From positions 531,413 to 595,412 of the forward strand of contig JAWQFM010000021.1 of assembly GCA_033442325.1 (NCBI GenBank): a DNA stretch of 64,000 nucleotides, in the 5' to 3' direction. How positions within the stretch are numbered: position 1 is the stretch's first letter; each line of letters starts with the position of its first letter. Made by a program: the position numbers and the translations under genes. This document shows, piece after piece, positions 1,143 through 3,119 of the stretch. Under the pieces are notes generated by a model. That model made no database searches and was not told the origin of the DNA. It saw only the letters and a program-made list of their open reading frames with translations. This DNA comes from Salpingoeca rosetta. Its lineage: Eukaryota; Protista; Choanoflagellata.

Positions 1143-3119
1143 ATGATTTTCGACATAGCACGCCTCGCGAAGATGGGAGCGGTTTGCATGATCCTCCTGC
1201 TCCTGATCGCCACCCGCATCAACAGCACCACCACCACCACCACTGAAGTGCGTGCACGTGCACGCGTTGCAGCGGAAGAACGAGATGAAGCAGTGAACAG
1301 ACCAACAGGAGGGCCACAAGGAGGAGGGGCAAGAAGAAGAAGAAGAAGGGAGGTGGTGGGACAAGGGCAGCCAGCAGAGACATTCGGTACCACCACCACC
1401 TTTGTGCGGCTTGGTGATGACGGCAAGGTCGCTTTCAACGCCAACGGAAACATCAGCGTCCGCCCAGCCTGCGGATATTCCCTGTTCATCGATGGCGTTG
1501 ATGTTGGGCAGACGTTGCTACACTTGCGAGACAACTCCGCACGCATCGCAGGGCCCCTGCAACAAGACACCGCCGCCGCCAACTCGACTGCAAGTGCAAA
1601 CGCCACACGGCAGTGCAGTCCAAGCGAGAGTGGCAACCGCATTTACATGGACGCGGCCGGTAACCTCAACATCGTCAGCCCCAGGTCCGTTTACCTCTGG
1701 TCCGGCACGAACAACACCTTCTTTGGCGACCGCCCGCTGCTCGAGCAAGCGCAGCTCCTTGACACCGCGCTTCAGGCTGGTGGCGCTAATGGGTCAGCCA
1801 TCGTCAGGCACGCTACCGTGTCCGCGCCTCCTGCAGCCCCCGGTCACGGCCCAGACACTTCCTCCCCCAAGCGAGCCAGCACGGGAAACCTCTTTGCAGA
1901 CCTCGACTTGAACATGCACATTGTCAGCGACAATGGTATTGCACTCAACCCTGCACCAAACAGCACCACGCAAGTCCATGACCTCGACGTCGTCGCCACA
2001 ATCAAGCAAGTGGAGGAAGTGGCAATTTCTCGCGGCCTCATCTCTAGAAACGGCACCATCATTGCAACAACAACAACAACAACAACAACAACAACAACAA
2101 CAACAACAACAACTACTACTACTACTACTACTACTACTACTACTACTACTACTACTACTACTACTACTACTACTACTACTACTACTACTACTCTCACTCC
2201 GTGCCCAACGATTGATCTTGACTGCTCAGACCCAGCATCACGAGCGCTTGTCGCCCAAATGAGCCACTGCCCAGTTCGCGACGTCGTCGAATGCTGCTGT
2301 GACGAGTTCTCGGCACTGCGCCGCGTAACAGGGTCAGTCACCCTCTCCCCGTCCACAACAACCCTCAACTTTGGATCCATCACCAGCGTTGATGGCGATG
2401 TACTCAGCGTCACCTCCCGCTCCAGCCCGGGCGCCCTTGCCACTGTCGACTGCGGGCAGCTGCAAAGGATCGGGGGCAACTTCGACCCCAGCTACAACGT
2501 CCTCACAGCAATCAACTTTCGCAACGTCACGCGGCTGGGCCGATTCAGGGTCCTCAGCAACAAGCTCGCCACCCTGCACTTTGCCAATATTGAACGCGTT
2601 GATGGCGGTCTCCACATTGGCGCCAACCACCTCACCTCGCTCGACTTTGGGCAGCTCACACAGGTGAACGGCTACTTTGCCATCACCTTCAACCCGCAGC
2701 TCACGACGCTGGACATGGGCAACATTCGCCGCACGCGCGGGATGGAGCTCGGGTACAGCTTCAAGCAGATCTTGTGGCGCAACATGGAAAGGGTAGATGG
2801 AGGCCTGTACTTTGGGGACGGAGACTTTGAGCAGCTCTCTTTCTCTAGTATCACGCACGTGGGCGGTCCCATTTACGTTCAGCGCAACTCCTTGACCACC
2901 ATCAACTTTGGCAGCTTACAGACCGTCACCGGCAGCATCTACATTTACAGCAACAACCTCCAGGCTGTGTCATTTGGCAGCCTTGCATCCGTTGGAGGCA
3001 CGATTGATGTGCACGACAACCCGCCTCTCGCATTCCTTGACTGCAAAGGGCTTGCCTCGTGCCTGAAAGCCAGCACCACCCTCACCATGACCCAGCAATG
3101 TCCTTTGCCTTGTGCTTAA
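1143..3119 (+). CDS. Intronless secreted protein: signal peptide, polybasic site, three cubilin-N-like repeats, poly-Thr stalk, receptor L-domain-like repeats
   Basis: 658-aa ORF (start may instead be 1173 or 1188). Hydrophobic [14 protein letters not shown] at ~1332-1349, three related ~45-aa units, an (ACA/ACT)n Thr tract at ~2067-2192, then ~22-aa repeats such as [22 protein letters not shown]. No C-terminal TM segment. Confidence 0.8.

Follow-up and report, generated by a model that had tools for sequence, protein, structure and literature searches.

Our question at this locus is why one protein carries three tandem copies of an N-terminal module that its relatives carry once, and whether a single chain could fold with them a head that would otherwise take three chains. 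The protein is encoded by an open reading frame at 1143-3119 (+) of the window, by which we mean the whole stretch of 64,000 nucleotides analysed here (Salpingoeca rosetta, assembly GCA_033442325.1, contig JAWQFM010000021.1, positions 531,413 to 595,412 of the forward strand). Its translation of 658 amino acids is PTSG_07860 and, judged by its sequence, the product is a secreted Receptor-L-domain protein with a mucin-like stalk. A preliminary description of this DNA had noticed three cubilin-like repeats behind a polybasic run, and suggested that they could form a single-chain pseudo-trimer. Our analysis leads to a tentative answer of the same kind, to which we give a probability of about 0.4: the three copies, R1, R2 and R3, may pack within one chain into a single head with pseudo-threefold symmetry and a short bundle of three helices.

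The repeats themselves are found where they had been described. Translation yields the quoted strings exactly (R1 at residues 87-131, R2 at 166-206 and R3 at 250-290), and the run RRRRRR is present ahead of them at residues 64-69 (window 1332-1349). Pairwise similarity among the repeats is weak, with shuffle p-values of 0.003 for R2 and R3, 0.23 for R1 and R2, and 0.10 for R1 and R3. We nevertheless judge them to be more than chance, because position matrices of the hairpin motif and the strand-helix motif, made from single-copy paralogues only and with PTSG_07860 left out, rank R1, R3 and R2 as the top three non-overlapping sites in the 658-residue protein (88/114, 248/276 and 165/192, respectively). 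The spacing from hairpin motif to strand-helix motif at these sites is 26, 28 and 27 residues. The combined matrix score of R1 is 19.8 (shuffle P of 0 in 2000), and the same 2000 shuffles gave P values of 0.001-0.003 for the second-best site, R3, and 0.0005 for the third-best, R2. Singly, the motif scores of R2 and R3 are not significant after scanning, and the hairpin matrix scores highest at R2.

The residues kept in each copy give a similar picture. R1 aligns end to end with the family, the match to the family hidden Markov model (HMM) covering residues 115-145. An Asp that is 100% invariant in the family is kept in R1, R2 and R3, and Ile17 is kept in R2 and R3. The other near-invariant residues are divided among the copies, with Asn18 and Gly34 confined to R1, Gly13 to R2 and His16 to R3. 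On these grounds, the N-terminal region is read as three tandem, strongly diverged copies of a head module of about 45 residues, which comprises a beta-hairpin, one or two short strands and a helix.

The single-copy form of this module is abundant in the genome of S. rosetta. One paralogue module as query gave 39 matches, and a profile gave at least 150, a lower bound because scores were computed for just 150 of 179 candidates. Nearly all copies lie in intron-free frames of about 440-520 amino acids. In the frames inspected, the module occurs once each, directly after the signal peptide, and is followed by a Gln-rich coiled coil, often with a Cys. The module consensus is xGEVVLxEDxxGALHINTSDPxxQPVFVNGVDV. 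Downstream, the typical member tested has DUF6923 repeats according to Pfam, and in a few members Receptor-L repeats take their place. R1 matches the N-terminus of two Receptor-L proteins of 316 amino acids on contig C4 (L002 and L003), and these nearest relatives also have Receptor-L-like repeats. The inspected family proteins end in ...DPGC without a hydrophobic tail. Contigs C4, C25 and C35 hold many of the genes, in clusters or as divergent pairs, and example loci of the family are L021:454-1725 (-), L052:484-1860 (-) and L004:1015-1965 (-).

Relatives outside S. rosetta were not found in any of three kinds of search. A phmmer search with residues 64-303 against 1.8 billion representative proteins returned only the protein itself and two spurious repeat proteins; word-indexed searches with PTSG_07860 and two family members returned only P0001, the public model of PTSG_07860, or nothing, and no S. 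rosetta paralogues; and one module scanned against metagenomes gave no match. No family in Pfam matches the head module. The module regions of the L021 and L052 proteins had no match in a word-indexed collection of 5.8 billion proteins, S. rosetta paralogues included, and the family may be absent from public annotation or modelled differently there. In the literature, we found no paper that mentions PTSG_07860 or links choanoflagellates to the cubilin head. The module defines a very large, apparently lineage-specific family of secreted proteins in S. rosetta.

PTSG_07860 shares the head motif with this family (R1 over its full length, R3 with P of 0.003 and R2 with P of 0.0005), but departs from it in several respects. 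It has three module copies instead of one, and a pre-region of 58 residues separates them from the signal peptide, which the family module follows directly. Its helices have about 14 residues, whereas those of the family have 35-60. The conserved N-T-S/T sequon of the family is lost, and a poly-Thr stalk is gained. Hence, a definition of the family as a module directly after the signal peptide with a coiled coil of at least 35 residues leaves PTSG_07860 outside.

What the single-copy module does is suggested by structure prediction. An AlphaFold2 model of the monomer (90 paralogues) had a predicted local distance difference test (pLDDT) value of 80.6, with strands at residues 6-9, 15-18, 31-32 and 35-36 and a helix at 37-74. 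Three copies modelled together with ESMFold2 gave an interaction score from predicted aligned errors (ipSAE) of 0.74 against 0.00 for the best control, with a partner pLDDT of 78, and three trimer-prediction runs share at least 91% of contacts. In calibration, 21 of 30 proteins solved as pairs and 0 of 23 solved as single chains had attained the ipSAE mark, a two-copy calibration that is rough for three copies. Predicted inter-chain contacts join residues 13-20, in the hairpin strand, with residues 28-39, around the VFVNG strand, of the neighbouring chain, and those between helices fall at heptad positions 41/45/48/52/55/59/62. The single-copy module is therefore predicted to be a homotrimerisation head in which neighbouring chains share strands and the helices form a three-stranded coiled coil.

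According to our proposal, the three copies of PTSG_07860 would be a monomeric version of this trimeric head. In the single-copy relatives, each hairpin strand would pair with the VFVNG strand of a neighbouring chain, and the helices would wind into the three-stranded coiled coil. In PTSG_07860, linkers of about 29 and about 34 residues would let the copies fold back on each other; from the sequence, we estimate that they can span back along a head and bundle of about 45 Å. That there are exactly three copies is a point for such a pseudo-trimer. Moreover, the helices, which have 35-60 residues in the family, are reduced in all three copies to about four core layers and end in the same register, with helix breakers at family positions 51-54 in every repeat (A-G-P, G-G and G). 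We infer the pseudo-trimer because of this equal cut of the helices, the flexible linkers, and the different subset of near-invariant residues in each copy. Different subsets are expected if the constraints of symmetry were relaxed, and are unexpected if each repeat associates with itself as in the family.

Several points weigh against this proposal. The trimer score of the single-copy module is the model's own confidence and not a measurement. In PTSG_07860, the family HMM sees only R1, and the profile search of the genome sees only R1 in the window. Asn33-Gly34, which is 100% conserved in the family, is missing from R2 and R3, at least in the ungapped register. The AlphaFold2 single-sequence model of residues 78-305 has a pLDDT of 33.8 and is uninformative about packing within the chain. 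The equal length of the helices could be mere inheritance from duplication. Finally, an in-register homotrimer accounts for tandem copies equally well, and is the simplest outcome of tandem duplication.

The last point leads to the alternative that survives best, although we consider it unlikely. Three parallel chains would form an in-register homotrimeric fibre, in which like repeats of the chains trimerise with one another, so that three nodes, each a head with a short coil, stand above three mucin stalks. The ancestral module is predicted to homotrimerise, and tandem duplication within a trimeric protein would lead directly to this arrangement; each helix also has core layers that would be acceptable as homotypic ones. 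Symmetric self-association should, however, preserve the near-invariant residues, and in R2 and R3 most are gone, each copy keeping a different subset. Furthermore, the long coiled coil that drives trimerisation in the relatives is missing from all three copies. The weak look-alikes from the Atlas also speak for a fibre, since they are trimeric phage fibres. These feature and shape matches were kept as leads only, their scores being below the level of evidence. Trimeric viral fibres, such as reovirus sigma1 (PDB 1KKE) and the phage head-fibre-like clusters of the Atlas, likewise start with short beta segments and continue into a trimeric coiled coil, but their scores remain below the evidence level (Foldseek E-values of 4-6.5 and feature scores below 0.9) and they have no sequence relation to the module.

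We are more doubtful that only R1 works and that R2 and R3 are decayed duplicates within a flexible, glycosylated spacer. This would explain why HMM and profile search find R1 only, why the motif scores of R2 and R3 taken alone fail to reach significance, and why the AlphaFold2 model of the segment is disordered. Decay is harder to reconcile with the invariant Asp, the alternating hydrophobic pattern and the spacing of 26-28 residues that R2 and R3 retain, with a joint P of 0.0005. In addition, the helix of R1 is short and ends at A-G-P, which would make R1 alone a poor trimeriser.

The public gene model leaves part of the repeats out of the protein. The features of the gene, with the basis of each in brackets, are as follows.

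1173-1226 (+): probable start at M11 and signal peptide (public protein P0001 begins at the same Met; hydrophobic core)
1227-1400 (+): low-complexity pre-region of 58 residues with a Thr run and a charged stretch, holding RRRRRR (sequence)
1401-1547 (+): R1, residues 87-135, canonical head module of the family with a helix that ends early at A-G-P (family alignment, HMM and matrix)
1548-1634 (+): linker 1, residues 136-164, Ala/Ser/Thr-rich, with two N-x-S/T sequons and Cys158 (sequence; no motif match inside)
1635-1781 (+): R2, residues 165-213, diverged copy with hairpin, extra strand segment and short helix to G-G (matrices, kept residues)
1782-1883 (+): linker 2, residues 214-247, Ala/Pro/Ser-rich (sequence)
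1884-2036 (+): R3, residues 248-298, diverged copy with hairpin, strand IALN, insertion of 9 amino acids and helix (matrices, kept residues, RNA reads)
2067-2192 (+): mucin-like stalk of 42 consecutive Thr, residues 309-350, encoded by ACA/ACT repeats (weak matches to Mucin in Pfam and to mucin in the PDB)
2202-3119 (+): Cys-rich segment and Receptor-L-domain-like repeats, to the stop codon (Pfam PF01030; region common to the L002 and L003 paralogues)

The Receptor-L assignment comes from PF01030 (Recep_L_domain), the sole Pfam match above the gathering cut-off in PTSG_07860, which scores 23.2 bits over the whole protein and 27.4 bits when the C-terminal part is taken alone (cut-off 21.8). M11 is preferred as the start partly because the first exon of a divergent minus-strand gene overlaps the ATG at 1143, which was set aside as start codon.

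The public model P0001 (490 amino acids) removes 1248-1427 and 1936-2229 as introns, so that the protein would be without RRRRRR, the first strand of R1, the end of R3 and the Thr stalk. Both stretches have GT..AG ends. They are also in frame and free of stop codons, and encode residues of the family motif. Sense-strand RNA depth over the gene is low, about 1-7x in three RNA-seq runs. At 1953-2033, inside the second annotated intron, it was 3.6, 3.1 and 1.8 in the three runs, equal to or above that of the neighbouring exons, and at this depth no splice joint was reported at PTSG_07860 in any of them. Because of this RNA depth in the second annotated intron, the lack of splice joints and the family-motif residues in both stretches, the continuous, unspliced frame is probably the main product, and the public gene model probably strips real coding sequence. 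A depth of just 1-7x tells against this by leaving room for a minor spliced isoform. That the annotated model of 490 amino acids is correct, and that the protein lacks RRRRRR, these parts of R1 and R3 and the Thr stalk, agrees with P0001 and with the GT..AG ends; it is very unlikely in view of the open frame, the motif matches and the RNA reads. Microsatellites of long CA/TG and CT repeats flank the gene (window 31-390, 3120-3300 and others), and repeat reads from elsewhere accumulate at 981-1385, raising the depth there.

Within the retained sequence, RRRRRR lies 17 residues upstream of the first strand of R1, and relatives begin the module at the mature N-terminus. Four Pfam matches above the cut-off to the convertase P-domain were found in the genome of S. 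rosetta. Because the run is present and the genome has convertase P-domains, RRRRRR may be a convertase site, and putative cleavage seems feasible.

The comparison with cubilin made in the preliminary description finds support in predicted architecture and none in sequence. The fragment of cubilin quoted there is correct, being verbatim residues 18-63 of PDB chain 6gje_B. The N-terminus of human cubilin (CUBN residues 36-131, PDB 6GJE) forms a trimer by inter-chain strand pairing and a coiled coil (Larsen et al. 2018, PMC6283879), and a trimer of the same architecture, with paired strands and a three-stranded coiled coil, is predicted for the S. rosetta module. In cubilin and in the PTSG_07860 family alike, the module is N-terminal in a secreted protein without a membrane span, and in both a hairpin and short strands precede a helix, for the single-copy module in its AlphaFold2 model. 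The polybasic run upstream of the module in PTSG_07860 is a further likeness. The strands-then-helix pattern that had been proposed stands as a recurrent module, with its architecture predicted in the single-copy models. None of the sequence tests connects cubilin with the module or with the repeats.

In a Foldseek search of the module model against 350,542 chains, cubilin chain 6gje_C came first and 6gje_B fourth, with weak scores (E-value of 2.7 and template modelling score of 0.42). By sequence, phmmer with residues 64-303 had no match in the PDB, and two family profiles (A1 and A2) did not reach cubilin there at E-values up to 10. Alignment of the module to cubilin by hhalign had a probability of 0.9% and a P of 0.058, and placed VFVNGVDV on KIKLNDEDL, in the register first proposed. 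Pairwise shuffle tests against cubilin were not significant (p of 0.1-0.5), and these comparisons brought out no sequence similarity to cubilin residues 36-131. EGF and CUB domains were not found by Pfam, which returned only Recep_L_domain in PTSG_07860 and DUF6923 in a typical relative. A search of the S. rosetta genome with PF14828 found no homologue of amnionless, and a highly diverged or analogous anchor would escape it; the sole match, of 20.3 bits, was rejected as it is below the cut-off and in low-complexity sequence. The cubilin fragment had only one match in the S. rosetta genome, C29:622087-622212 (+), which is not significant (E-value of 1.09). A family member, at C29:620249-620407, lies some 1.7 kb from this match.

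We treat the cubilin likeness as functional analogy, in which the module plausibly works like the N-terminus of cubilin, and kinship is not established. True homology, with an ancestor common to the module and the metazoan cubilin N-terminus and with docking on an amnionless-like membrane anchor, would agree with the shared architecture (predicted for the module; PMC6283879), the Foldseek ranks 1 and 4 of the cubilin chains, the hhalign register, and the inspected family proteins, which like cubilin have no hydrophobic C-terminal stretch; with the sequence tests as they are, we hold it highly improbable. Still fainter is the prospect that cubam-like docking predates animals, with some 150 anchorless secreted trimers docking end-on to a membrane anchor by way of their conserved cubilin-like heads, and with PTSG_07860 as a natural single-chain pseudo-trimer of such a head that lets a monomeric receptor share that anchor.

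A known system with possibly non-identical protomers is the atypical CUBAM of Drosophila, where Amnionless is reported to be complexed with two different cubilin paralogues, Cubilin and Cubilin2 (PMC8710305). If both paralogues enter one head, its protomers would be non-identical, which is what a pseudo-trimer requires. The protomers there are separate chains from two genes, whereas those of PTSG_07860 would be tandem copies in one chain.

The neighbouring features of the window are of other kinds. At 106-1160 (-), several exons of the divergent neighbour encode short-chain dehydrogenase-like motifs (TGKTAVVTGATRG; NNAGI). At 3592-5964 (-), a long frame has motifs like those of protein kinases (HGDLKTKNVLVD) and nucleotide cyclases (FFSDIVGFT ... 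GDAYM); intron-like CA-repeat stretches break it up, and by these motifs it is probably a receptor-type kinase and cyclase gene. Around 26250-26950, the zero GC-content of the window is an assembly gap and not composition.

If the three copies of PTSG_07860 do form one head, tandem triplication would here have turned a homotrimeric, intertwined module into a natural single-chain pseudo-trimer. Some 150 copies of its symmetric ancestor would survive alongside it in the S. rosetta genome, and would offer a system for studying symmetry breaking in protein evolution. Moreover, the predicted architecture, parallel to that of cubilin, raises the question of whether this way of docking, with a trimeric head set end-on to a membrane anchor, is older than animals or has arisen twice.
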